Shown one piece after another: positions 6,083 to 62,780 of a DNA stretch of 64,000 bases; the stretch's first letter is position 1, and every line of letters starts with the position of its first letter. This stretch comes from Macrostomum lignano. Lineage: Eukaryota. The stretch lies in contig NIVC01003903.1 of assembly GCA_002269645.1 (NCBI GenBank), positions 1-64,000 on the forward strand. Direction: 5' to 3'. Made by a program: the position numbers and the translations under genes. The notes under the pieces are model-generated. The model made no database searches. It was not told where the DNA came from and worked only from the letters and a program-made list of their open reading frames with translations.

Positions 6083-6119
6083 CTGAGTGAAGATGGATCC
6101 GAGCGGTAATGAGTAGAAG

Positions 6120-7232
6120 GGAATGAGAGCGAGAGTAGATGAGAATGAGAGCAAGAGTAGATGAGAATGAGAGCAAGAGTAGATGAGAATGAGAGCGAGA
6201 GTAGATGAAAATGAGAGCAAGAGTAGATGAGAATGAGAGCGAGAGTAGATGAGAATGAGAGCGAGAGTAGATGAAAATGAGAGCGAGAGTAGATGAGAAT
6301 GAGAGCGAGAGTAGATGAGAATGAGAGCGAGAGTAGATGAGAATGAGAGCGAGAGTAGATGAGAATGAGAGCAAGAGTACATGAGAATGAGAGCGAGAGT
6401 AGATGAGAATGATATCAAGAGTAGATGATAAGAATGAGATCGAGAGTAGCTGAGAATGAGAGCGAGAGTAGATGAGAATGAGAGCGAGAGTAGATGAGAA
6501 TGAGAGCGAGAGTAGATGAGAATGAGAGCAAGAGTAGATGAGAACGAAAGCGAGAGTAGATGAGAATGAGAGCGAGAGTAGATGAGAATGAGAGCGAGAG
6601 TAGATGAGAATGAGAGCGAGAGTAGATGAAAACGAGAGCGAGAGTAGATGAGAACAAGAGCGAGAGTAGATGAGAATGAGAGCAAGAGTAGATGAGAACG
6701 AAAGCGAGAGTAGATGAAAATGAGAGCGAGAGTAGATGAGAATGAGAGCGAGAGTAGATGAAAACGAGAGCGAGAGTAGATGAGAATGAGAGCGAGAGTA
6801 GATGAAAACGAGAGCGAGAGTAGATGAGAATGATATCAAGAGTAGATGATAAGAATGAGATCGAGAGTAGCTGAGAATGAGAGCGAGAGTAGATGAGAAT
6901 GAGAGCGAGAGTAGATGAGAATGAGAGCGAGAGTAGATGAGAATGATATCAAGAGTAGATGAGAATGAGAGCGAGAGTAGATGAGAATGATATCAAGAGT
7001 AGATGAGAATGAGATCGAGAGTAGCTGAGAATGAGAGCGAGAGTAGATGAGAATGAGAGCGAGAGTAGATGAGAATGAGAGCGAGAGTAGATGAGAATGA
7101 GAGCGAGAGTAGATGAGAATGATATCAAGATTAGATGAGAATGAGAGCGAGAGTAGATGAGAATGATATTAAGAGTAGATGAGAATGAGATCGAAAGTAG
7201 CTGAGAATGAGAGCGAGAGTAGATGAGAAGAC
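6120..7232. repeat. 20-bp minisatellite gagcgagagtagatgagaat
   Basis: Directly visible tandem array. Confidence 0.95.
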
Positions 7233-7607
7233 AGCGAGTATAATGAGATCAGCAAAAGCAGCTCACCCATTCTCTCCAGCAGAAATATCCTGTTGCACAG
7301 TGTTAGTCGCTAAGCTGAGGTATTGATATTAATAAATTTATGCCAGAAGTCGGGTGTTTTTTGAAATGACAGAAAAGTAAATTTCATGCAAAGATCGTAC
7401 ACTCTGTGCTGCTGTGCTGCTTATCTAACACTGCTGTTCAAGCTTTTAGAAGCAATTTCTGTGACAAAAACAGAAATTCCTAAGGTGCAGTCAACATTAT
7501 CAATGTATTTATCTTAACCGCTTTGACGAACTGTATTTCTGCTTCTTTGCCAAAGCAAATGTAGTGTAAATGAACAGTGTGCTTTGAAATCGTAAACCGA
7601 GTGAGAT

Positions 7608-8265
7608 GGAGAGAGGAGAGGTGGGGCGAGGGAGAGAGGAGAGGTGGAGTGAGTGAGAGGAGAGGTGGAGTGAGTGAGAGGAGACGTGGAGCGAGGGAGA
7701 GAGGAGAGGTGGAGTGAGTGAGAGGAGAGGTGGAGCGAGGGAGACAGGAGAGGTGGAGCGAGGGAGAGAGGAGAGGTGGAGTGAGTGAGAGGAGAGGTGG
7801 AGCGAGGGAGACAGGAGAGGTGGAGTGAGTGAGAGGAGAGGTGGAGTGAGTGAGAGGAGAGGTGGAGCGAGGGAGACAGGAGAGGTGGAGTGAGTGAGAG
7901 GAGAGGTGGAGTGAGTGAGAGGAGACGTGGAGCGAGGGAGAGAGGAGAGGTGGAGTGAGTGAGAGGAGAGGTGGAGCGAGGGAGACAGGAGAGGTGGAGT
8001 GAGTGAGAGGAGAGGTGGAGTGAGTGAGAGGAGACGTGGAGCGAGGGAGAGAGGAGAGGTGGAGTGAGTGAGAGGAGACGTGGAGCGAGGGAGAGAGGAG
8101 AGGTGGAGTGAGTGAGAGAAGAGGTGGAGTGAGGGAGAGAGGAGAGGTGGAGTGAGTGAGAGGAGAGGTGGAGTGAGGGAGAGAGGAGAGGTGGAGTGAG
8201 TGAGAGGAGAGGTGGAGTGAGGGAGAGAGGAGAGGTGGAGTGAGTGAGAGGAGAGGTGGAGTGAG
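7608..8265. repeat. GA-rich 20-22-bp minisatellite gagaggagaggtggagtgagt
   Basis: Directly visible tandem array. Confidence 0.95.
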
Positions 8266-9125
8266 GAAGAGAAACGATAAGTAGATAGAAGCAAGTGTGC
8301 AATTAAACCTTTTGTCCCTTTTGCACATCCTGCTTGAAGAAAATTCTACATTAACTGAGCATTGCTATTCGCGAGGGGCACCGCGGACAGCATGAGTAGT
8401 TCTACTGGACAGATAAGCATATTGATAAGGATGTTTGTCAGACCTCTTTATCAGGATTTAGTTGACGTCAGCCAGAATCTACTAGCGCATATATTCTAGA
8501 CTAAATTGTGGACTGCAATATCCCCGATCTAAAGTAGAGCGTGATAGTTGGCAACTACTAGCTTGAGAACATGAGCGAGCCGCAGCAGCAGCAGCAGCAG
8601 CCTCCACCCTATGATGTCGTCACTCTCGAACCAAATGCCGCAACTATCGAAGAGAGCAGAAATTATCGATTTACAGAGTGTGAAATTATCGATTTATAGT
8701 GTGAAATTATCGATTTCTTGTGGGTGAAAGCATCGTATTTCATTAGGCTCAATACTTGAGAAGTTGCTGTTCCAAAAATGCAACGTCTACTCTTTGTAGC
8801 TGGCGTTTAAAACAAGCAAGAATCAACAGCCAAAAAAAACATTGGTTTGTCGTTTGCTTCTAAATTTTTACCAACCTTTGGCAAAACACTCACAGGAAGC
8901 AACCCAGCCACCCCTGATTGCTAATAAACTTAGCAGATGCACAGCCTGTGCGCAGTGCAGGGCGGGCAGTCAATGCACACCGCCAGCTGCACCCCACTGC
9001 ACACTCTACCCCAGCTGTACAATACGCACAGGGCGCAGCACTAAGACGGAAGGCGCAGGCAGTTCATATCAGCCTTCATCTCAGCAGTGAATTCTCAGCT
9101 AACTGCAAGCATCGCAGAGGCCGTC

Positions 9126-12100
9126 ATGCCGCTCCGCCAGCCGCTGAACCTGCGCACCAGACTGCACCAGGTGCGAGCTCGCTACCCATCCACCTGGGCC
9201 ATCCTGGGCCGCAAGCTGCAGCAAGGCGAATCTTGGCGAGCTCTGGTTGAAGACTACCTGGATTCTGAGGGCCGGCCTCTGTCAGCCGACCAGGCCCTGC
9301 TGGTCTGCCAGAGTCCTGGCGGAGAAGCCGCGGCCGCCCTGCTGCTGTGGGAGCGCAGCTGCAGCCTTGAAGAGCTGCTGGAGGTCCTGAGCCGTCGGGG
9401 ACTTCGCGAAGCCGAGGCCTTCGTGCGGTCCAACCTGCTGAACCAGGCCTGGCAGCCTCCGCCCACGACTGCGGAGCCGCCCCCTCCGTCTCTTCCGCCC
9501 CCGCCCCCGCCCGCGCCTCCGCCTCCGCTTCCACCAGACGACTCGCCGCTGGAGTTCCCGGCGGAGCAGCTCCGGCGCGCCGTGGCCTGCGGCTCCCTGA
9601 TCGGCTCGGGCGGCTTCGCCGAGGTCTTCCGGACGGCAGCGCTGGTCGAAGGCCGGCAGCACGCGGTGAAGGTCTACCGACCGGGCATCAGCGAGGAGGC
9701 GCGCCAGGCCATCCGCAGGTCGATCGGCGCCCTCAGCGGCCTGCGGCACCCGAGCATCGCTCGGCTGGTCGGCTTCGGCTACTCGCCCGCCGACGACCGC
9801 ATGTACTCCGTGTTCGACTTCCACAGCAACGGCGACCTCCGCCAGCTGCTCGACCGGTTCGCCGAGCCCCACAGCTGGTGGTCGTCGGCGGAGGCGGTGG
9901 CCAGCGGGTTTCACCTGGGCGGCACGCGGCTCCGCATGGCAACCGACATCGCCTCGGCCGTGGAGTTCCTGCACGCCACCGAGGAGAAGTCGATGGCGCG
10001 AGACGAGCGGGCCGGCCTCCTCAGCTTCAGCTTCGTGCACAAGGATGTGAAACCCAGCAACATCCTGGTTGACGGCGACTGGCGCTGCCGCCTCGCCGAC
10101 CTGGACTTCCTCGACCTGACCACCGCAGGGCTCGGCCAGACCGTCTGGGGTGAGCAGCGGGCCCAGCAGGTGGCCAGAGTGCACACGCTGGGCTACCGGC
10201 CGCCCGAAGACCGAGTCACCTGCAAGTGGGACGTCTTCAGCACCGGGGTCACCATCTTGGAGCTGCTCACCGGCCTGCGCGGCCAGCCCGCCAGCAGCGA
10301 CACTCCGGAGGAGTCCTGGCTCTGCTGGGCCCTGGCCGACGGTCGGGCTCCGCCGCCTCAGCCGGGGCTGCGGCTGTCCGCAGGTCTGCACGCCCGCGTC
10401 TGCAGAGAAGCCGTGGCGCCCTGCCTGCTGCACAACTTCGCCGAGAGGTGCACCGCCGCGGTGCTGCGGGGCCGCCTGCAGACGCTGCTGGCCGCGGCCG
10501 AGGCCGAGGACGGTGAGGCCGGGCTGCAGGAGTTCAGCTTCGCCGAGCTGGATGCCGCGGTCGGCGAGGAGCTCGGAGCCGGCAGCTTCGGCCGCGTGTA
10601 CCGGGTGAACCTGGCAGGGCGGCCGGTCGCCGTCAAGAAGCTGCTGCCCGACTCTGCGGGCATCCCGCTGGAGGCGCTGCGGCGCCAGGCGGGCCTCCGC
10701 CATCCCCGGCTGCTGTGGCTGCTCGGCTTCGCTCACCGCGGCGAGGCGGCGGGCGGCGACCTCCTGCTGGTCTACGAGCTGTGCGAGGCCGGCAACCTGC
10801 GGCAGCTGATTGACGACTTCGCCGCCGGCCGGGCACCGCCCGCCTGCGAGTTCCAGCTGGCCGGAGTTCGAATCCGGATGGCGCACGAGCTGGCCAGCGC
10901 CCTGGACTTCCTGCACAGCTGGCAGGAGGTCGAAGCCGCAGCGGCTGGCGACTGGCGCAGCTTCAGCCTGGCGCACCAGGATGTGAAGAGCACCAACGTG
11001 CTGCTCACTGCTGACTGGCACTGCAAGCTGGGCGACCTGGACAGCCTGCAGGTGCGTCTGGGGAGATCGGGGACAGCCTGCAGGTGTGTCTGGGGAGATC
11101 GGGGGCAGCCTGCAGGTGTGTCTGGGGAGATCGGGGACAGCCTGCAGGTGTGTCTGGGGAGATCGGGGACAGCCTGCAGGTGTGTCTGGGGAGATCGGGG
11201 GCAGCCTGCAGGTGTGTCTGGGGAGATCGGGGACAGCCTGCAGGTGTGTCTGGGGAGATCGGGGGCAGCCTGCAGGTGCGTCTGGAGAGATCGGGGACAG
11301 CCTGCAGGTGCGTCTGGGGAGATCGGGGGCAGCCTGCAGGTGCGTCTGGAGAGATCGGGGACAGCCTGCAGGTGCGTCTGGGGAGATCGGGGACAGCCTG
11401 CAGGTGTTGGGGAGATCGGGGACAGCCTGCAGGTGTGTCTGGGGAGATCGGGGACCGTCTGGGGAGATCGGAGACAGCCTGCAGGTGTGTCTGGGGAGAT
11501 CGGGGACAGCCTGCAGGTGTGTCTGGGGAGATCGCGGCTGCTCAGGCAACTGAGTTGAGGCTGCTCCGTCCTTTGAGTAGGGGCTGCTCTCCGTTCTCAG
11601 TCTCAGACTCTCCCTCCCTTCCTCCTCCCGCGCCAAGGACCACTGTAGTTTAACGCCAAGGACCACTGTAGTTTAACGCCAAGGACCACTGTAGTATAGC
11701 AACATGGACCACTGTAGTTTAACGCCAACAAGGAGGAATGAATGATTCCAAATTTTCCCTAAGCAGCCTCATCACAGTCTCCATTCCTGCCCCATCAGAC
11801 GGCCACCGCAGGATCGGGCCTCACGCGGATGGAAGACAGGCCGCAGTCCTCGCAGCCCAGAATCCGCTACTTCACCAATGGCTACTTCGTGCCGGGAGAA
11901 CCGGACAGGCCAGGCGCACCTGGCGAGCTCCTGTCCTGCAAGGTGGACGTGTACGCCCTTGGCGTCACCCTGCTGGAGCTGTTCACCGGCCGGCGCGCCT
12001 CTGGCGGCGGTGAGCCCGAGCTGCGACTGAGCCTGCTGGGCGACTCGTCAGTGCAGCAGCCGCCGTCGCCGCAGGTAGGGCTGCTTATCAGCGACAGGTG

Positions 12101-12233
12101 CTATCTAGACCTGTGCGACAGGGTGTTCAGACCGTGCCTGGCCCTGAACTCGGCTCAGCGACCGACTTCCACCAGAGTGCTGCAAGAACTCGACAGATTT
12201 TACAGCAGCTGCGAACCGGATCTGGAAAATTGA
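9126..12233 (+). CDS. Death-domain protein with two tandem IRAK/Pelle-like kinase domains; exons 9126-11051 and 11799-12233
   Basis: N-terminal death-fold-like region (W..L...L...S...A...LL..W....SL.ELL..L...L) followed by a Pro-rich linker. Kinase 1: GSGGFAEV, AVK, HKDVKPSN, DLD, GYRPPE, WDVFSTG. Kinase 2: GAGSFGRV, VAVKK, LLVYE, HQDVKSTN, DLD, VDVYALGVTLLELFTG. Phase-0 intron CAG|GT...ATCAG|ACG joins subdomain VII to VIII. Confidence 0.85.
11040..11535 (+). repeat. 32-bp intronic minisatellite containing the exon/donor junction (gacagcctgcag|gtgtgtctggggagatcggg)
   Basis: About 14 copies, most carrying CAG|GT. Confidence 0.95.
11631..11727. repeat. 23-bp repeat cgccaaggaccactgtagtttaa, about 4 copies
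   Basis: Directly visible. Confidence 0.85.
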
Positions 12234-13479
12234 GTGCAAAGCTGGGATTGCGCGCTTTGCTCTGATTTTTTTAAATTTGTCCCGATTCGATCAACACTTC
12301 GACTAGCTTTTAGTCTTGAGCTTCAAGAGTGTACCACAGGAAGACAAAAAATAGTGTTAACTTCTCGTGCATGTAGCCTTGGAAGTCTCATCACATTTTA
12401 AGCTATGAGACTAGACTTTGTAGTTTTAATATTTAACCACTATATACGCGCGCGTAGTAGAAAATAAAGAATTTGTCTTATGTGGAGGTATGCTGCGTTT
12501 TAATATTTTTTTCGTTGATTCTGCTTTATCCATTGCAAAGACACACTCGTAAAAATTGACAGTACTTCTACGTTTTACTTCCATGTATGATAAAAAACTT
12601 AGGACATCCTGCTTTCTGTTGTTGGCAGATTTAATTACTGATTGTGGGTAAAAATGGTGCTATGCTATAAAGGAATTAAAACTAATGGATTGAAAGATTT
12701 CTTTGAAAGAGAAATTTTTTAAATCATTTTAAAAGTTCTTCAAGCAGATTTCACCTTGGCTCATTTTTAAAACTTTTGTTATTTTGAAGTGTAAGTGCCG
12801 TGTTTAATATTTAAACTCAGTCAAAAAGTTTTAGTTTTAACAATTGATTTAATGATCGATTATTACGCCACGTTGCATGTGCAGCGTAGCAACACGGACA
12901 AAAAGCAGTCTCCTGCCCGACTCCTGGAAGGCATTCACCTCAGCGTCAATATAAGCAAAAATTCTTTGCGTTATTTAGTTAGTAATATGTTTGTATTTTT
13001 GGGCATGCATTTTTGCAACTTAACCTTGGCTTGGCCCCTTGCTAGCCCACTAGATTAGTCAGCTTGGCTAGGTGTTGTGCATGTACACTACAGTACACAG
13101 TATACCTTTTTTATGTCTACGCAGCTGCCAGCTGCTCAACTAAATGTACTAGGCCCCTAAATGTTATCCATTTGTACAAACAAATCTATTATTATATTGA
13201 CTATTGCCACTTTGACTGTCACCTGGATTGTTTGTTGCTGTATTATCTTGTTGCCAGTTTGACTAAAAGTTTATAGCATAGGTCTTAGACTAGTATAAAT
13301 GCTTTAAAGATAGTAATTATCATGGAAAATTTGTTTTTATTACTTGACAAACATTGTTTTGTATTAGTAGGCCTACTATATATATTATATTATACAACTA
13401 AAATAAATTGTAATTATACTATCTATATTAATATTAATAAAGGTATAGACTATAGCAATTATATATTTTAATAAATCCT

Positions 13480-17905: not shown

Positions 17906-19427
17906 ATGGACTACAATATTGGTATTAATGCATGCAAACCAGCTTCTGCTCTCAATGGGCCACCATTCCAACAGTGCATTCTTGACTCAAAGGATGTTTC
18001 AAGGTAAGAAAAAAAATTGTATTTTTCTATGTTTACTTTTTATATCTTGATACTAATTACATTTTTAAAAATAATGTATTGATCCTTATTACTAAAAAGA
18101 TAATAAGTAATAATTTTCATTTTTTAAAAACTTCCTTTAAATTTGTAATATTGATTCTGAATCTTTAGAAGTTAAAATTATAAGATATTTATCAATAGGC
18201 CTATTGATCCCATCTATTATGGATGCTGATCCCTAAACCTAGAATACTGATAACTCTAATTCTAATAATCTCTAAGCCTTGGATACCAATACCCAAGTGT
18301 TAGATACTAGCCCCTAATCCTATGATACTAATGCCTAACCCTAGCTTACAAATTTCTAATCCTAGAACACTGATCCCTAATCCTAGCATACAAATCCCTA
18401 CTCCTAGGGCACTGATTGTTAATCCTAGGATATAAATCTCTAATCCTAGGACACTAATCCCTAATCCTAGCATACAAATCCCTAATCTTAGTTCATTAAT
18501 CGCTAATCCTAGGACACTAATCTCTAATGCTAGCATACGAATCTCTTATCCTCGGACACTAATCTCTAATCCTGGGACACTAATCCCTAATCCTACGACA
18601 GCAATCCCTAATCCTAGGACAATAATCCTTAATCCTTTAAGCTACTCCCTAATCTTAAATTACCGATCTCGAATGCCGCGACTGATCCCAAACCCCTCAA
18701 TCGCAGAGCGGCCTACCGGTCCGACGGCACCGGTCGCCAGCGCCAGCCATCGGCGCCAAGCACCGCCGTGGAGGAGGCCGCCGACAGTGACTCCAGCGGC
18801 AGCCGAGTCCGGGTCCTGACGCCCAGCTGCCAGCTGTGCGAGCTGCACACTCTGCTGCGGGATCGCGACACCAGCCGGTCGGATTTCGTATTCTACGCTG
18901 ACAGGCTGATTCGACTGCTGGTTGAGGAAGCGCTGAACTACCTGCCCTACCAGTCCCTGTCGGTGCTGACGCCAGGCGGGCATCCCTACGACGGCCTGCG
19001 CGCCTCCCGCGGCAGCTGCGGCATCAGCGTTATGCCGTCTGGCGAAGCGATGGAGAAAGGCCTGCGCGACTGTTGCCGGGCAATCCGCATCGGCAAGATG
19101 CTCATCCAGGGAGGCGACTGCGCTGGCGGCGACTGCGCCGACGCACCGGAGCCGGTGTACGTCCGTCTGCCGCCTCGGGTGCACCAGCGTCGAGTCCTGC
19201 TGATGCAGCCAGTGCTTGGCGACGGCCGAGTTGCCACCAAAGCCCTGCAGCTGCTAACCGAGGATTATCAGGTGCCCGAGTCGAATCTGTTTCTGCTTAA
19301 TCTGTTCTCAACTCGGCACGGCTTAGACTCTGTGCTGTCGGAGTATCCGGACGTTCGGGTGCTCACTACCGAGGTGCACGATCTGGTGCCGTATCACTTC
19401 TGCGCCAGGTATTTCGGCATCGACTGA
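17906..19427 (+). CDS. UPRT: Uracil phosphoribosyltransferase homolog; exons 17906-18003 and 18707-19427
   Basis: LHTLLRDRDTSRSDFVFYADRLIRLLVEEALNYLPY, GISVMPSGEAMEKGLRDCC, IRIGKMLIQ, HFCARYFG. Phase-2 intron AG|GTAAG...CGCAG|A supplies an ATG-containing first exon. Confidence 0.9.
18230..18655. repeat. 21-bp intronic minisatellite ctaatcctaggacactaatcc
   Basis: Directly visible. Confidence 0.9.
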
Positions 19428-22118: not shown

Positions 22119-23138
22119 GCATCCCCGGCCGCAGTCCGCCTTGGCCGCGACTTCTACGCCCGCGACTGCGTGGAGCTGGCTAAGCGGCTGCTGGGCCAGC
22201 GCCTGGTCTGCGAGGCCTCGGACCCCAGCGGCTGCCGCTCAGCCGGCCGCATAGTGGAAACTGAGGCCTACCTGGGCGAGGCTGACCCGGCCGCGCACTC
22301 TTACAGAGGCCCAACTGAGCGCAACGCCGCTATGTTCATGCAGCCGGGCACCTGCTACGTGTACAGCATCTACGGCCAGTACTGCTGCATCAACGTATCA
22401 TCCAATGGCGACGGTTGCGCAGTACTAATCCGCGCCTTGGAACCGTGCGAAGGCGAGTCGGCTATGCAGTCGCGACGCGGCAAATTCGGTAAAACTACTA
22501 ATAGTAGCAATAATACCGTTGGCGCAAAATTGTTGAAACCGCACGAGCTGTGCAACGGTCCGTCCAAGCTGTGCCAAGCACTAGCAATTGATAAGCTGAC
22601 TCATAATAAAACTGACATGTGCGATCCGGCTGCCCGGGTGTACATTGAGTCGGCGCCCGGCCCGCCAACCAATCAGATTGTCACTTCGCGGCGGATCGGT
22701 ATTGACGGCTGCGGGCCGGCCGCCGCCGCCATGCCGCTGCGATTCTATTGGCTCGGCTGTTCCTGCGTTAGCCGGCGAGATAAGGACGCGGAGGCTTTGA
22801 CGGCGCCAGCCGAGGCGGCAACATCAAAGGCGTCAACTAATGCCAACTTGCCAACTTCAAAGCAGATATCGCAAGCAACTTCAAAGGCACCGCCGCCAAA
22901 TTCAAAGGCACCGCCGCCAACTTTAAAGGCACCGCCGCCAACTTCAAAGGCACCGCCGCCAACTTCAAAGGCACCGCCGCCAACTTCAAAGGCACCGCCG
23001 CCGCCAACTTCAAAGGCACCGCCGCCAACTTCAAAGGCACCGCCGCCGCCAACTTCAAAGACGTCGGCTAGGCCTAAATCACAAATCCGGAATGCCGATT
23101 CCGATTCGTCGCCACCCAAACGAAAGCGGCTTCGCTAG
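22119..23138 (+). CDS. MPG: 3-methyladenine DNA glycosylase (AAG/MPG) with SKAPPPT-repeat tail; initiator Met not in the genomic ORF
   Basis: RLGRDFY..DCVELAKRLLG, GRIVETEAYLG..DPAAHSYRG.TERNAAMF..PG..YVY.IYG.Y.C.NVS, AVLIRALEP, NGPSKLCQAL, RIGI. Confidence 0.93.
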   Translation, partial: ASPAAVRLGRDFYARDCVELAKRLLGQRLVCEASDPSGCRSAGRIVETEAYLGEADPAAHSYRGPTERNAAMFMQPGTCYVYSIYGQYCCINVSSNGDGCAVLIRALEPCEGESAMQSRRGKFGKTTNSSNNTVGAKLLKPHELCNGPSKLCQALAIDKLTHNKTDMCDPAARVYIESAPGPPTNQIVTSRRIGIDGCGPAAAAMPLRFYWLGCSCVSRRDKDAEALTAPAEAATSKASTNANLPTSKQISQATSKAPPPNSKAPPPTLKAPPPTSKAPPPTSKAPPPTSKAPPPPTSKAPPPTSKAPPPPTSKTSARPKSQIRNADSDSSPPKRKRLR

Positions 23139-24241: not shown

Positions 24242-25587
24242 ATGAACGGTGAATTTGGCGCCAGGCATCGGCGCGAGCCAGTCGGCGCCAGCTGGGGTCG
24301 CTCTGGCGCCTGGCAGGAAACTTACTACGGCTCCCCGGCGCCGTCACCGCCTGCCGCGTCTGGTTTTAGCGCCACGGCGCCGGCGTCAAACGCGTCGATG
24401 GCGCCTTCGTTGCCGAGCGGCGGCGCCGGCGGTTGTCGCGATCGGACGCCGGAATTTCGCGCCGTCGTCTCCCAGATGTGCGGCCTTGGCGGCGGTGCCG
24501 CCGGTTGGCGCCGAAGAGCTGGCGCCACACCAGGCGCCGTTGGCGAGTCCCGTTTCGCAATGCACGCGCGCCAAATTGGCGCCAATTTGAATCGGACAGG
24601 CGCCAAAATGCAGAAACTGGCGCTGCTGGCCGGGCGTACCGCCACCGGGCATCAACAGCTGCCGGTTTCTGTCGGAGAGTTCGACGAGCTCGCCAGGATT
24701 GTCGGTCAGGTGAGAGTGCAACTTCTGACTGGCGATATGTATCGTAAATAACTTTGTTTAGCGTAAAAGCTGCGTTAAATTTTTAAACAAAGCTGATGAA
24801 ATTTGGTAAAATTTAATAGTTTAAATATTGGAATTCCATCCCAATGTCTATCCTAATTATTCCCATTCTTATCCTCTATCTGAGGTTAAGCAGAGTCGGT
24901 TGTGGTTAGTATGCAACTTCAATATCCGAGAAGCTTAAAAGCGGGTATATTGCTACTCTACTGTTAGTAATATCAGCTTGATCGGAAAAACCGGCACTTG
25001 CACAGGATCTGAACGGCCTGAACCAGTCGATCGGATTGCTGCAAGACTCCATCAGGCACAGCGGCGCATCTCCGCACGGCCAGTCGGCAGCCCACAGTAG
25101 CGCTGTAGTGCTGGCGCTGCAGACCCGTCTGGCCGACATGTCCGGCCGGTATCAGGACACTGTCCAGCTGAAGCAGCAGCAGCAGAAGCAACACCAGGCC
25201 GCCTATCAATCTGATTCGATGCACCGCAGTCAATCTGACGCTTCGGTCATTGACATGTCGGGCATCGTGGAGCAGCACCAGCGGCAGGGCCAGGTGCTCG
25301 CCAATGCGCGGGAGCAGGACGAGCGGGACGATGCAATGCGAAGCATCGAACAGACCATGGTGGACCTCGGCTCCGTGTTCCAGCAGCTCGCCACCATTGT
25401 GAAGGAGCAGGACGAGCTGGTGCACCGTATCGGAGCCAGCGTTGACGACACCGCCCTCAACGTCGATGTGGCTCACGCGGAATTGTTAAAATTTTTCAAA
25501 TCTTTAACCTCAAATAGGAGCTTAATGCTGAAGGTGTTCGGCCTGCTTGTCATTTTCTTTGTCTTGTTTGTTGTGTTTCTGCGATGA
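24242..25587 (+). CDS. STX5: Syntaxin-5; exons 24242-24709 and 25006-25587
   Basis: CRDRTPEF N-peptide, Habc-like region, SNARE motif AMRSIEQTMVDLGSVFQQLATIVKEQDELVHRI, SNRSLMLKVFGLLVIFFVLFVVF C-terminal TM. Phase-0 GT-AG intron. Confidence 0.93.
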
Positions 25588-28223: not shown

Positions 28224-30139
28224 ATGGCCTCAATAAGTGAGGAGCAGCAGCTGCCGCAGAAGCGCTATTTCCGGCAGCGGGCGCACTGCAACCCGCACTC
28301 CCGGCACAGTCTGGACTCGCCAAGCCGGCCGGCTGACGTCGACTGGCCGGGCATCTTTGCCAGCGATTTCAAAGAAGGCGACGATGTGGAATTCGCCGAT
28401 GTCGGCTGCGGCTACGGCGGCATGCTGTTCGCCCTGGCCGAGCTGCACCCGGACAGGCGGGCGCTCGGCATGGAGATTCGGATTAAAGTGTGCGACTATG
28501 TGCAAGAGAAGATTCGAGCTATGCGGGCCGCTCATCCTGGTTGCTATGGCAACATTGCCTGTGTCAGGAGCAACGCTATGAAACAGTTGGTTAATTATTT
28601 TCGAAAGGTGCGCGTTCGCAGAGTTTGATAATTCTACACTCAAACAGTAACTTCTGCCAATTCCTGAGATGCCATTTTTGATCTGAAACTGTTGTCGCAT
28701 CGTTGTTAGATGTGACGCATTGAGCTGAACCACAACTTGATGCATTGATTCCAGGAAATGACACCTTAATTCCAGGAAATTACACCTTGATTCCAGGAAA
28801 TGACACCTTGATTCCAGGAAATGACTTCTTGGTTGCAGGAAATGACACCTTGATTCCAGGAAATGACACCTTGGTTGCAGGAAATGACACCTTGATTCCA
28901 GGAAATGACTTCTTGGTTGCAGGAAATGATACCTTGATTCCAGGAAATGACACCTTGATTCCAGGAAATGACACCTTGATTCCAGGAAATTACACCTTGA
29001 TTTCAGGAAATGACACCTTGATTCCAGGAAATGACACCTTGATTCCAGGAAATGACACCTTGATTCCAGGAAATTACGCCTTGATTCCAGGAAATGACAC
29101 CTTGATTCCAGGAAATTACACCTTGATTCCAGGAAATTACACCTTGATTCCAGGAAATGACTTCTTGGTTGCAGGAAATGACACCTTGATTCCAGGAAAT
29201 TACTTCTTGGTTGCAGGAAATGACACCTTGATTCCAGGAAATTACACCTTGATTCCAGGAAATTACACCTTGATTCCAGGAAATTACACCTTGATTTCAG
29301 GAAATGACACCTTGATTCCAGGAAATTACACCTTGATTCCAGGAAATGACACCTTGATTCCAGGAAATTACACCTTGATTCCAGGAAATTACTTCTTGGT
29401 TGCAGGAAATGACACCTTGATTCCAGGAAATTACACCTTGATTTCAGGAAATGACACCTTGATTCCAGGAAATTACACCTTGATTCCAGGAAATGACACC
29501 TTGATTCCAGGAAATTACACCTTGATTCCAGGAAATTACACCTTGATTCCAGGAAATTACACCTTGATTTCAGGAAATGACACCTTGATTCCAGGAAATG
29601 ACACCTTGATTCCAGGAAATGACACCTTGATTCCAGGAAATTACACCTTGATTCCAGGAAATTACTTCTTGGTTGCAGGAAATGACACCTTGATTCCAGG
29701 AAATTACACCTTGATTTCAGGAAATGACACCTTGATTCCAGGAAATTACACCTTGATTCCAGGAAATGACACCTTGATTCCAGGAAATTACACCTTGATT
29801 CCAGGAAATTACACCTTGATTCCAGGAAATTACACCTTGATTCCAGGAAATTACTTCTTGGTTGCAGGAAATGACACCTTGATTCCAGGAAATGACACCT
29901 TGATTCCAGGAAATAATGTCTCGATTCCAAGCAATGACCAAACTTGATTCCAGAGAATAACACCTTGATTACAGCAAATAATATCTTTATTCTTAAGTGA
30001 AACAATTTTTGGAAAGAACATCGTAATTCTAAGAAATTCACATCTTAGTTCTAGGAAATGATGCATTAATTTTCTGAAATGAAACTTGATAATTTAAGCA
30101 AAATCCGATTAGAAAATCAGAGGGCCGTTTTACACCCTG

Positions 30140-46911: not shown

Positions 46912-47895
46912 TTAGGAATTAAAGACGAATCGCCGGAAACTGAACGTCAATCGACGCAGTCTGGCCGCCAGCTTCCCGTCTGCGGCTGCTGCTTGTTGCT
47001 GCTGAGGATGCAGCAGCTGAGGCGGTTGCAGCGCTGACGACGGAGGCGGCGGAGCTCGCCGTTTTGATGCCCGCCTGTAGTCCTCGCTGCTGGCTGAGCG
47101 TCGAACTGTGGCCACTGCAGTGATCGGTGTCGGGGGCGGCGGTCGAGGCGGTGGAGTGGGCAATCGCGGTGGCGGAGGTCGCTGCGGCGGCAGCTGCCGC
47201 GATGCAGATGACTCTTGGGTTGGCGAAGTCTCTAACTGAGGCGCAGTCTGCAGACGCGGCACCGGTCCGGCTTGGGGCGGAAGCAGGTCGTTCAGCAATG
47301 CGGGAAGTTGTATGCGACGCCAATCCTGCTGACCATCGGCGACAGACAATCCGGCGATCAGGTCGGCTAGAACTGCTTCAACTGCATTCAGCCGGGCAGC
47401 GTCACTTCGCTCGGGACTTGTCAATGCCGTGGAAAGCGCGCCTGGATCACTTCCTGTGCTTGAATTTGCAACACCGGAAGCAGCACCGGAGGCAACACCG
47501 GAAGCAACTTCAGAAGTAATTCCGGAAGCAACACCGGAAGTAAAATCTGAAGAAGTATCTATAGAAATAACATCAGAAGTATTCGTGCCTTCAGAAGCAA
47601 CACCAGAAGCGTAGATTGCCGCTCTACGCCGCTCGACCAAGCCAGCCAGGCAGACATTTCTGGGCAGCTCCAGTCCCGCAGGACAGCGGCCTCGGCAGAG
47701 CGGGCAGGCGTCACCGCCGGGCTGCTGACGCCAGTCGGTCAGGCAGGCGCAGCAGAAGCTGTGGCCGCAGGGCGTCACCCGTGGATCCTCAAACAGGCAG
47801 TCGCAGATGCTGCAGGTGAGATCCGCGTCATCGTCATCATTGGATAGATCTGCTCTGACTCGCTCAGAAGTTCCTAATCCGAGTTGTGACATCAT
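46912..47895 (-). CDS. RING-HC (C3HC4) finger protein with low-complexity, Pro-rich C-terminus
   Basis: CSICDCLFEDPRVTPCGHSFCCACL...CPLCR followed by N..L..LVE. Single exon; acceptor acacag lies 3 nt before the ATG. Confidence 0.85.
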   Translation of the reverse strand: MMSQLGLGTSERVRADLSNDDDDADLTCSICDCLFEDPRVTPCGHSFCCACLTDWRQQPGGDACPLCRGRCPAGLELPRNVCLAGLVERRRAAIYASGVASEGTNTSDVISIDTSSDFTSGVASGITSEVASGVASGAASGVANSSTGSDPGALSTALTSPERSDAARLNAVEAVLADLIAGLSVADGQQDWRRIQLPALLNDLLPPQAGPVPRLQTAPQLETSPTQESSASRQLPPQRPPPPRLPTPPPRPPPPTPITAVATVRRSASSEDYRRASKRRAPPPPSSALQPPQLLHPQQQQAAAADGKLAARLRRLTFSFRRFVFNS

Positions 47896-60148: not shown

Positions 60149-61186
60149 AGTCGGCCGCTGTTGTATGTACCTTCAGATTCAGGCGACGGTATGGGGGTCA
60201 TCACACTGTCCCATTTCATTGCAGCTAGTCGTCTCAGCCAAGAACCGGAAGATATTGACGATGAGGCGGACTCCATTCTACCGCTTCCGAAATGGCTCAG
60301 AATGCTTAGAGCAGCTCTGGATTGGTTTTGGAACCAATGGAAGACGTCCTACTTGGAGTCTCTGCGCGAGAAAGCCCTAAAGGATCAACCTAACCACCGC
60401 CTACCAAATGTTGGTGAAGTAGTTCTTCTGGCAGGTGAAGCTCAACAACCAAGACTCAAGTGGAAATTGGGTATTGTCGAGGAAGTTCGTCCTGGCCGTG
60501 ATGGTGCTATCCGGTCGGTTCTTTGCATTGCGGGTGCTGGGAGTTCTTTGGGAACGGGTGAGACAGCCAGTCCAGTCGTTAATTCCTTTAGAGGTTCAAT
60601 CCTAAGACCGTTATTTTTTTGTCCTTTCCCACGACTCTCGAATTTGTTTGCTAACTTTTTTGACAGCCTCTTGCAAAATTTTGTAATGGGAAAAGGTTTG
60701 TTTTCTGTTTTTGAGATAATTCTCTTGGTGGTGGACAATGTTACGCGTCATTATTCGTCATTTTTCCATTTACGTTGTAATATATTTTTTCCTCATCTAT
60801 CATGCTCACATACACTTAAACTTGGCTCTAACAGTTTTCTGTTCTCTGCTGACTGTTTCACTTACAACAACAAACCAGTCCTTGTCTGTTATGCTAAGAT
60901 TTTTTTCCTTTTTCATTGTTTTTTTTGCAACAAGTTTGAATGTAATGTAGTTTTGCTGCTCCGAATTTAAAAAATCAAATGATAAATCATTTGGGGGGAG
61001 TGTCGAAAAATGAGTTGGCCTAGGCTAGCCGCTTATTTCATCTAATTTATTTTCTCTTATTTTTCACTGTATGCACAATGTATATCTCCGCCAACACCCC
61101 AAAATTCGTTAAGTTAGAAAATATAAAAGCTGGATTCTGGGCAGCGACCGCCCTAACTTCATTTTCTTTATCGCCAGTCAAAATCA
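60149..61186 (+). mobile_element. BEL/Pao LTR retrotransposon 3' fragment (DUF5641-like region, PPT, 3' LTR about 61001-61186)
   Basis: RPLLYVP...ITLSHF, WFWNQWKTSYLESLRE, VGEVVLL, WKLGIVEEVRPGRDGAIRSV. GGGGGGAG at 60993-61000 is followed directly by TGTCG; candidate LTR end ...AATCA. Confidence 0.75.
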
Positions 61187-62780
61187 ATTATTGGTTTATT
61201 TTATTATAGGAACAGGGATTAAGACAGACATACTTAAAAATTGTCCAATAATTTATGATACTGCCCAAGTTATTACAATCTTTTTGCATCTTTCCACTGA
61301 TGGCTGTAGCTTGTACTCTAATTCTCCCTCTTCTTTGTGGCCTGTTCAAGCTCAAATTTTAAATCTTCCAACATTTTTGCATTTTCAGCCAGAAAACTTC
61401 TTAATTTTTTCTCTCTTTCTTGGTGCAAAGAAGCCTAACTGGAAAACATTTCTAGAAGACCATCTGGCTTCAGTTTTTGAAAAAAACATTCTGTTTTACT
61501 ATTCAAAACAGGCCTATGCATTTTCGTGTTAAACTCTTTTCGGCTACTTTTGATCTTCCTGCCTTGGCTAGCATACTAAACCATAAGCAATTTAATGGCG
61601 AGTTTGGTTGCCTTTACTGTGAAAATCCCAGTAGTACTGTTAAAGTCGGCCATGGATCCGCACGCAAGTATTCTGAGCCTCATTTATCTACTCCAGTTTC
61701 GAATGCTGTTTATTTATCACGAGTTCAACTAGTCTGTCTCTCTGGTGAGAAGAGCCTTTTTGGTATTAAGGGTGATTCTGTTCTTAGGAAGTATGTGCGC
61801 ATTCCAAAGAATATTTTGCTTGATTCATTGCACTTTCTTTATGAAAATTGTTGTGGCACTCTAATGAAATATATGTTTGATGGTTCCTACCAACAACTGA
61901 GTTGCTACCTTGGGCAAAGTCTGCCCTTCTTTAATGATACTCTTAAAAGAGTCAGCGTGCCTAAGTCAGTAACAGTATCATTTTGTCTAGAGCTTCGCTC
62001 TTCGTGGAAAGCCAAGGATTACATGTTCGCTGCAATGTATCTATTGCCTATATTTGCTTTCCATTGCTTCAGTAGGAAAAATCAGGCATGCGCCATTGCT
62101 TTGCTTTCTTTTTCTCTTGTTTGTCATGTAGCAAATTCTGTAGACTGTGAGCACTACTTGGCGCTTCTCAATAAAGTAATTCAACACTTTATGTCAACTT
62201 TAGGAACTGCATTTGATGCCAATGTATACACAATTAATTTTCATCTCCTGTGTCATTTGCCTGAACAGCTTCTCAATTTTGGTCCTCTAACAGGATACTC
62301 TATGTTCTCATTTGAGAGTCAATTTTCAACGGTAAAGAATTATATTCAAAGGAATCGATTCCATATCAAGCAAATATGCGAAAAGCTCATTCTGCAAAAA
62401 TGTTGCACTTTCTGTCTTAAGGAGGGAGCTGCTGCTCAATCTAACAGCTGCATTTTTGAGCTGCTCACTTCTAAGTTTAGAATTTTATCAAGCAGTCCTT
62501 CCGCCTGCTGGCGATTTCTATCCACTTATGCAATAGTGCAAAACAATCGTCTCTTTTATGCTACTTCTTATTCGAAATTGCCCCCTACTCGGTCATGTAT
62601 TGTGCAGTTGAAAGATGGTTGTTTCTGCAAAGTAGTTTGTTTTCTGAATGGCACCGATATTTTAGCTGATGTAATTTTTTTAGACATCTGCAATTTACAA
62701 GACTTTTTAGGTAAAGTGGCTCGCTTGATGAAGAGTAGATAAATAAAGGTACATATCAACATGAAGTGTTGTTTGAGTTG

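Follow-up and report, generated by a model that had tools for sequence, protein, structure and literature searches.

The 64,000-nt stretch of flatworm DNA analysed here (the window) carries at positions 9126-12233 of the forward strand a two-exon gene whose protein is 99% identical to Macrostomum lignano PAA94098.1 (BOX15_Mlig022961g1). The spliced coding sequence (CDS) of 2361 nt joins both exons in frame and encodes 786 aa, in which an N-terminal helical head, a proline-rich linker and two protein kinase domains, K1 and K2, follow one another. The gene was compared with two other genomic copies, L001 (NIVC01000016.1) and L002 (NIVC01003316.1), which lie on M. lignano contigs of 922 kb and 104 kb, respectively. 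Its parts are as follows.

8884-9125, plus strand: conserved 5' leader; begins the 3.4-kb block common to the other two copies (homology with L001 and L002 begins at 8884-8889) and has an in-frame stop upstream of the ATG.
9126-11051, plus strand: exon 1, 1926 nt, with the ATG at 9126.
9126-9455, plus strand: N-terminal helical head, residues 1-110, a candidate death-fold domain ending AWQPP (the IRAK1 death domain ends AWHPP).
9456-9560, plus strand: proline-rich linker, residues 111-145 (PPPTTAEPPPPSLPPPPPPAPPPPLPP), with poly-Pro at residues 111-139 and an indel site at 9494.
9561-10505, plus strand: kinase domain 1 (K1), residues about 146-460, by Pfam Pkinase and motif alignment.
10506-11051, plus strand: kinase domain 2 (K2) from its N-lobe to the Mg-binding motif, residues 461-642; DLDSLQ closes exon 1.
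11052-11798, plus strand: intron, 747 nt, phase 0, GT-AG; donor CAG/GTGCGT at 11051/11052; acceptor at 11798/11799, a polypyrimidine tract followed by CAG/ACG.
11799-12233, plus strand: exon 2, 435 nt, residues 643-786 plus the stop (TGA at 12231-12233).
11799-12233, plus strand: remainder of K2 in exon 2, with the activation segment (TNGYFVPGE), alphaF (DVYALGVTLLELFTGRR) and QRPTS.

The gene model is sound, since spliced K2 spans positions 3-259 of the 263-position Pfam Pkinase profile, and 9126-12233 is a real, transcribed M. lignano gene. Underlying it are two open reading frames (ORFs) of the same frame, of 823 codons (9087-11558) and 134 codons (11829-12233), with the ATG at 9126 as the first start downstream of an in-frame stop. 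The junction peptide DLDSLQ/TATAGS is identical in five public gene models (P0001 and P0020-P0023), and the GenBank models of this species were built by genome-guided RNA-seq assembly (PMC5730564). The intron, which splits K2 directly after DLDSLQ (Q642), had been missed by an earlier reading of this DNA made from its letters alone (the sequence-only reading). Two separate single-kinase genes, the outcome which that reading had named as fatal to it, were rejected because the ORF runs unbroken from K1 into K2 and because P0001 and P0022 each cover both domains in one gene model. A candidate mini-intron at 12076-12098 (CAG/GTAGGG...GACAG/G) was also rejected; it measures only 23 nt, the frame is open across it and the public models read through. 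Neither paralogues elsewhere in the window nor structured RNAs in the window were found. The gene is already present in databases, only as truncated entries described as "hypothetical" or "protein kinase domain-containing", and a literature search for a death domain combined with two kinase domains turned up no paper describing such a protein.

The 5' splice site lies within a repeat. A 32-nt tandem array at 11039-11534 begins 13 nt inside exon 1, and the exon end together with the 5' splice site (CAGCCTGCAG/GTGYGT) is repeated 14 times. The frame is open across the array, and every third downstream donor would add multiples of 32 aa just after DLD. The array is also present in L001 and L002, with different copy numbers. 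A second, 23-nt repeat lies within the intron at 11631-11728.

Profile searches recognised both kinase domains. The whole protein contains two Pfam Pkinase stretches (E 7.6e-36, 124.3 bits), and the single domains score 73.5 bits (K1) and 57.2 bits (K2), both above the gathering cut-off of 31.7. The sequence-only reading of two full kinase domains stands. K2 spans nearly the whole profile; the match of K1 when scanned alone ends at position 194 (5-194/263), its C-terminal third being too divergent for the profile. The domains were then placed in a motif alignment with verified IRAK1 and IRAK4, eight plant receptor-like kinases (RLKs) and bacterial kinases. K1 displays GSGGFAEV, K182 (9669-9671), gatekeeper F230, H305-K-D307 (D307 at 10044-10046), D325-L-D327 (10098-10106) and PPE; K2 displays GAGSFGRV, K504 (10635-10637), gatekeeper Y550 within LLVYE, H617-Q-D619 (D619 at 10980-10982) and D637-L-D639 (11034-11042). 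Every motif that had been read from the letters was borne out by this alignment: a beta3 (VAIK) Lys and a catalytic Asp in both kinases (K182/D307 and K504/D619), non-RD catalytic loops (HKD in K1 and HQD in K2, invariant across the three genomic copies), DLD where DFG is usual in both domains, a Tyr gatekeeper in K2, and a missing alphaC Glu in K1, where the alignment column is occupied by Ser. K2 lacks about 8 residues of the alphaC region present in the reference kinases, and a Glu lies one position off the column, which leaves the alphaC Glu of K2 ambiguous. K1 and K2 share an insert of 13-15 residues preceding the catalytic loop. Both domains of all three copies retain the catalytic Lys, Asp and Asn as well as the Mg-binding Asp. 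By its motifs, K1 is the more degenerate kinase half and is likely regulatory.

The protein contains no transmembrane segment and no signal peptide over its whole length. A receptor kinase was rejected on the absence of a signal peptide and on the position of the hydropathy peak, whose maximum of 1.49 over 19 residues falls within alphaF.

K1 and K2 are mutually closest relatives (36% identity, E 3e-47), and a trace of their common origin persists in the DNA, where 10022-10111 and 10958-11047 are 72% identical over 90 nt. They were monophyletic in 100/100 bootstrap replicates of a neighbour-joining (NJ) tree. The protein identity, the DNA trace and the monophyly together indicate that the two domains arose by internal tandem duplication in this lineage and not by fusion of unrelated kinases. 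The intron is present in K2 only; K1 has none at the homologous codon.

The family of these kinases was approached by profile ranking. Several of the reference sequences are provisional (PKA, CDK2, SRC, BRAF, RIPK1/2, TGFBR1, TAK1, MLK3, LRRK2, LIMK1, EGFR, PknB, AURKA, Pelle, IRAK2 and IRAK3); IRAK1 and IRAK4 were checked and are 100% identical to P0144 and 98% identical to P0024, respectively. Against all PDB sequences, a K1+K2 profile scored best with CERK1 (86.7 bits), followed by FLS2, PBL2, BRI1, Pto and FERONIA. Ranks 1-49 are all plant RLKs, plant receptor-like cytoplasmic kinases (RLCKs) or IRAK4 (86.7-62.5 bits, with IRAK4 at 67 bits); PknB, with 61.5 bits, is the first entry from outside these groups, and IRAK4 exceeds it by a small margin. 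RIPK1 reached only 39 bits against the same profile. When the domains were used alone, plant RLK/RLCK domains again scored highest, CERK1 being the best match of K1 (61 bits), and within the local reference set the best matches of K2 were Pelle (40.8 bits) and IRAK4 (39.3 bits). A tyrosine gatekeeper is a hallmark of IRAK/Pelle kinases (PMC3498205); K2 carries one, whereas K1 has Phe. The single kinase of IRAK/Pelle proteins is replaced here by two kinase domains in one ORF, the arrangement of tandem kinases, with both on one polypeptide and no receptor ectodomain. On these scores K1 and K2 appear to be very divergent TKL-type kinases whose nearest family is RLK/Pelle/IRAK, of which they are candidate members. 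The earlier assignment to IRAK/Pelle is supported by a ranking headed by RLKs and IRAK4, but not by the tree discussed below.

The N-terminal head was compared with known death domains by sequence and by structure prediction. In a Smith-Waterman comparison the head and the verified IRAK1 death domain scored 55, a value equalled in 2/5000 shuffles. The alignment is colinear from helix 3/4 to the AW(H/Q)PP end, after which a Pro-rich linker follows in both proteins, and the score lies within the range of genuine cross-subfamily pairs of death domains (IRAK1-IRAK4, 51; IRAK1-Pelle, 30). Thirteen death domains beat their own reversed versions against the head (Wilcoxon P 0.008); MyD88, IRAK2, IRAK3, Pelle, FADD, FAS, TNFR1, RIPK1, CRADD, NGFR and TRADD served as provisional references. 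Profile-profile alignment with hhalign gave P 0.0087 for IRAK1 and P 0.022 for a profile that mixes members of the IRAK family; these death-domain profiles are very shallow (Neff 1.1-3.3), because the IRAK4 protein search yielded mammalian orthologues only. Modelled by AlphaFold2 (AF2) without homologues, the head forms seven helices over residues 9-105 at low confidence (mean pLDDT 54.8); a death fold is an antiparallel bundle of six helices and about 90 residues. The same seven helices appear when IRAK1 and IRAK4 death-domain rows are supplied, and one of five models then reaches pLDDT 64.9; compared with the death domains of IRAK4, Tube and Pelle, this guided model gives TM 0.61-0.65 (IRAK4, 0.65). 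Taking these comparisons with the contrary ones given below, the chance that the head is a death fold is put at roughly two in three.

Comparison of the three copies bears on whether the gene is maintained. L001 and L002 are mutually syntenic, while the window shares with them only 8884-12259, the gene with 242 nt ahead of the ATG and 26 nt beyond the stop (L001 9079-12296, L002 7988-11393). This block measures 3.4 kb and its flanks are unrelated; therefore, the window copy is a dispersed duplicate at another locus. No terminal repeats, target-site duplications or poly(A) were found at the block ends. A retrocopy origin was rejected, as the intron is kept and the block end has no poly(A). Exon 2 is 99-100% identical to that of L001 and L002. 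Substitutions among the copies number 21 in the 2361 nt of CDS (0.9%) versus 9 in the 242 nt of 5' leader (3.7%), and those in the CDS are 13 synonymous versus 8 nonsynonymous (P 9e-4). Read as codon changes, these substitutions show purifying selection.

With a probability of about 0.48, we favor the view that the gene encodes a lineage-specific, soluble signalling protein of 786 aa, in which a helical, highly diverged death-fold head is connected by a Pro linker to a duplicated pair of TKL-type kinases. In the proposed mechanism, the head would act as a death-fold module that gathers copies of the protein by homotypic oligomerisation. K2 is the predicted catalytic unit, given its canonical Gly loop, Tyr gatekeeper and RP(T/S) motif and with Pelle and IRAK4 as its best references, and K1, which lacks the alphaC Glu, has Phe as gatekeeper and is divergent in its C-lobe, would be its pseudokinase-like regulatory or scaffold partner in cis. 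As in IRAK/Pelle complexes, the non-RD kinases would be switched on by proximity and not by priming of the activation loop. An immune or cell-death role for the gene is a guess by analogy. The broader scenario, in which a basal flatworm, of a phylum from which IRAKs are reported to be absent, retained or reinvented an IRAK/Pelle-derived kinase and duplicated it in cis to give a death-domain-pseudokinase-kinase protein convergent with the tandem kinase immune proteins of plants, themselves of RLK/Pelle descent, is doubtful. Least certain are the identity of the head as a death domain, the assignment to IRAK and the junction between head and kinases.

Several observations weigh against the favored view, and many of them would fit a different protein, a TKL-like tandem kinase whose helical head is an orphan and no death domain, unrelated to IRAK/Pelle signalling and resembling it by coincidence. 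The head matches no Pfam family at E<=10 and no PDB sequence at E<=10, and an exhaustive phmmer search of 1.84 billion proteins with it gave 0 matches at E<=0.001. Under the same Pfam Death model the IRAK1 death domain scores 52.8 bits and that of IRAK4 22.1 bits, just under the cut-off. The hhalign comparison with IRAK4 gave P 0.29. In a Foldseek search the unguided AF2 head had no significant match, its TM scores to death folds being below 0.4, but 5/30 of its weak matches were death folds. The guided model is circular and can suggest compatibility only, since the input alignment steers it. What had been called a death-like domain is thus not confirmed, empty searches of Pfam, PDB and 1.84 billion proteins standing against weak IRAK1-like pairwise and profile similarity and a low-confidence helical model. 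The NJ tree (248 columns, 35 taxa, several references provisional) leaves K1 and K2 outside the IRAK/Pelle/RLK clade: their sister group was LRRK2/"other" TKL in 55% of replicates, bacterial kinases in 22% and IRAK/Pelle plus RLK in 1%, although the method is crude, the K1+K2 branch is long and long-branch artefacts in this placement are likely. In K1, scores against bacterial PknB-type kinases are about level with those against IRAK4. Given DLD, the shortened K2 alphaC and the inserts ahead of the catalytic loop, it may be that neither domain is catalytic. IRAK/Pelle kinases are recruited through death-domain adaptors of the MyD88/Tube type, and IRAK1, IRAK2 and IRAK3 bind TRAF6 by P-x-E motifs; the protein described here has neither a TRAF6-type motif (P.E..[FWYDE]) nor a C-terminal tail, and a literature search on the gene ID found no paper naming the gene. 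Surveyed planarians and parasitic flatworms are reported to have no IRAK, MyD88, TRAF6, TLR or NF-kB, Macrostomum being outside the survey (PMC4484250). Against an orphan head speak the colinear similarity to the IRAK1 death domain, including the shared AW(H/Q)PP end and the Pro-rich linker that follows, the death folds among the unguided matches, and the kinase comparisons, in which Pelle and IRAK4 are the best references of K2 and the profile ranking is led by RLKs and IRAK4. This alternative fares best among those considered, yet we regard it as unlikely.

The head-kinase junction raises a second alternative, in which head and kinases are separate and the continuous ORF is a copy- or assembly-specific accident in the C-rich, microsatellite-like linker, the products being a head-only protein of about 160 aa and/or a kinase-only protein. 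The poly-Pro linker of the sequence-only reading is indeed present. The head, K1 and K2 share one frame in the window copy only; in a C-rich run of the CCCCGC type at 9494, L001 carries 5 and L002 carries 11 additional nt, two insertions differing by exactly 6 nt, and in both copies the head is out of frame with the kinases and meets a stop about 40 codons later. L002 additionally lacks one base at 10176. As a consequence of these frame breaks, the public models begin inside K1; all five are without the head, and the exhaustive search with the head retrieved no M. lignano protein either. These points count against the favored protein as well. The layout of head, linker, kinase and kinase proposed from the letters, an unusual one, thus stands as one ORF in the window copy, while its death-domain and IRAK labels are weakly supported.

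Other features of the copies argue for a joined protein. No ATG precedes mid-K1 in the kinase frame of L001 and L002, yet the N-lobe motifs of K1 are intact, and the changes private to these two copies are 10 synonymous versus 4 nonsynonymous (P 7e-4); therefore, the kinase frame must be translated from a start further upstream, for which the head ATG is the sole candidate. Within the head, all 3 substitutions among the three copies are synonymous, and its conservation exceeds that of the 5' leader fourfold. The ancestral head-kinase junction must have been in frame. The +5 and +11 insertions are too long for simple homopolymer errors but lie in a low-complexity run, so that assembly artefacts and genuine variation in length are both conceivable; the Mlig_3_7 assembly combines PacBio/Canu with short-read polishing, and the genome is highly duplicated. 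Separate products are a less probable outcome than an orphan head on a single protein.

Far less probable is that the gene belongs to a recently duplicated family as a copy in decay and without function, possibly brought to the locus with repeats. Such an origin would suit a 3.4-kb dispersed duplicate that shares no flanks with its relatives and adjoins satellites, as it would the frameshifts in two copies and the non-canonical key kinase motifs. It is contradicted by the synonymous excess among the copies, by the intact 786-codon ORF of the window copy and its RNA-supported models, and by the catalytic Lys, Asp, Asn and Asp that every copy keeps in both domains. A bacterial PknB-like kinase acquired by horizontal transfer, or a contaminant, later duplicated, is equally improbable: a bacterial TPR-kinase heads the non-self database matches (E 2.7e-8), in the local reference set K1 reaches 61 bits with a bacterial kinase but 41 bits with IRAK4 (plant RLKs there score about as bacterial kinases do), GC3 is 86% versus 53-62% in neighbouring genes and bacterial kinases are sister in some of the bootstrap replicates noted above, but the gene is interrupted by a spliceosomal intron whose junction has RNA support, its other copies lie on long M. 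lignano contigs and the window copy stands among ordinary eukaryotic genes, identity to bacterial kinases is only about 30%, and PknB ranks below 49 RLK/IRAK4 entries in PDB.

Around the gene, the window contains the following features.

18768-19427, plus strand: uracil phosphoribosyltransferase, neighbouring ORF.
22170-23138, plus strand: methylpurine-DNA glycosylase (MPG), neighbouring ORF.
24242-25587, plus strand: syntaxin-5-like SNARE, two exons, neighbouring ORF.
46912-47895, minus strand: C3HC4 RING-finger protein, neighbouring ORF.
60161-60970 and 61477-62742, plus strand: transposon-related ORFs (DUF5641, DUF4218).

Two large satellites lie just upstream of the kinase gene (6111-7238 and 7599-8272), one a 22-mer in 51 copies and the other a GA-rich 44/65/109-mer, and a similar GA-rich repeat is found directly downstream of the gene in L001 and L002. 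Overall GC of the gene is 70%; the neighbours whose GC content at third codon positions (GC3) was set beside its own are the MPG and RING genes. Its antisense strand carries a stop-free ORF of 794 codons (9282-11666), a by-product of this GC3 bias. The region 28230-30041 consists of low-complexity repeats, and ORFs within it give spurious Pfam matches on both strands.

Should the head be a genuine death domain and the kinases be of IRAK/Pelle descent, a Myddosome-type module would have survived in at least one flatworm lineage, despite the reported lack of IRAK, MyD88 and NF-kB in planarians and parasitic flatworms (PMC4484250), and animals would have a case of the pseudokinase-kinase tandem that arose in plants out of that very kinase family. 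Its function would then be directly testable, M. lignano supporting transgenesis. Should the head be something else, what is left would be a fast-evolving, lineage-specific tandem kinase, useful chiefly for its corrected gene model, since every public model is truncated at the N-terminus.

Among known systems, the IRAK/Pelle kinases (IRAK1, IRAK4, Drosophila Pelle and Tube-like kinases) resemble the M. lignano protein in having a helical N-terminal domain of about 100 aa, a Pro-rich linker and a TKL-type kinase. The linker of IRAK1 starts AWHPP where AWQPP stands here; K2 carries the family signatures DVKSTNVLL, LLELFTGRR and QRPT besides its Tyr gatekeeper, and the non-RD catalytic loops of K1 and K2 resemble those of IRAK1 and Pelle (HGD). 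Unlike IRAK/Pelle proteins, the M. lignano protein has two kinases, DLD for DFG, no alphaC Glu in K1, a short alphaC in K2, inserts before the catalytic loop and no C-terminal tail with TRAF6 motifs, and its head, unlike the death domains of IRAK1 and IRAK4 with their 52.8 and 22.1 bits, goes unrecognised by Pfam Death. Plant RLKs and RLCKs (CERK1, FLS2, PBL2, BRI1 and Pto), several of which are non-RD, for example FLS2, are the top-scoring relatives of solved structure for K1, K2 and K1+K2; identity to them is only about 25-30%, and unlike them the gene described here is an animal gene encoding a helical head and neither an ectodomain nor a transmembrane segment. RIPK1 and DAPK1 also combine a kinase and a death-fold domain in one protein, but their death domain is C-terminal, their kinase is single and they belong to other families.

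Parallels to the paired kinases exist in other groups. In JAK, GCN2 and IRAK3, a degenerate kinase domain regulates an active one, the IRAK3 pseudokinase acting in trans through dimers. JAK JH2-JH1 and GCN2 share with K1-K2 the order of a degenerate domain first and a more canonical one second, but the kinase groups are unrelated and the likeness is one of analogy only. To our knowledge, the named tandem kinase protein family is specific to plants, and its plant members have no death-like head. Plant tandem kinase proteins such as RPG1 and WTK1/Yr15 are soluble, contain two RLK/Pelle-type kinases that came together by duplication or fusion, and typically have one degenerate half. The M. lignano protein shares this architecture without being a member of that family, and with K1 and K2 mutually closest its origin is independent.

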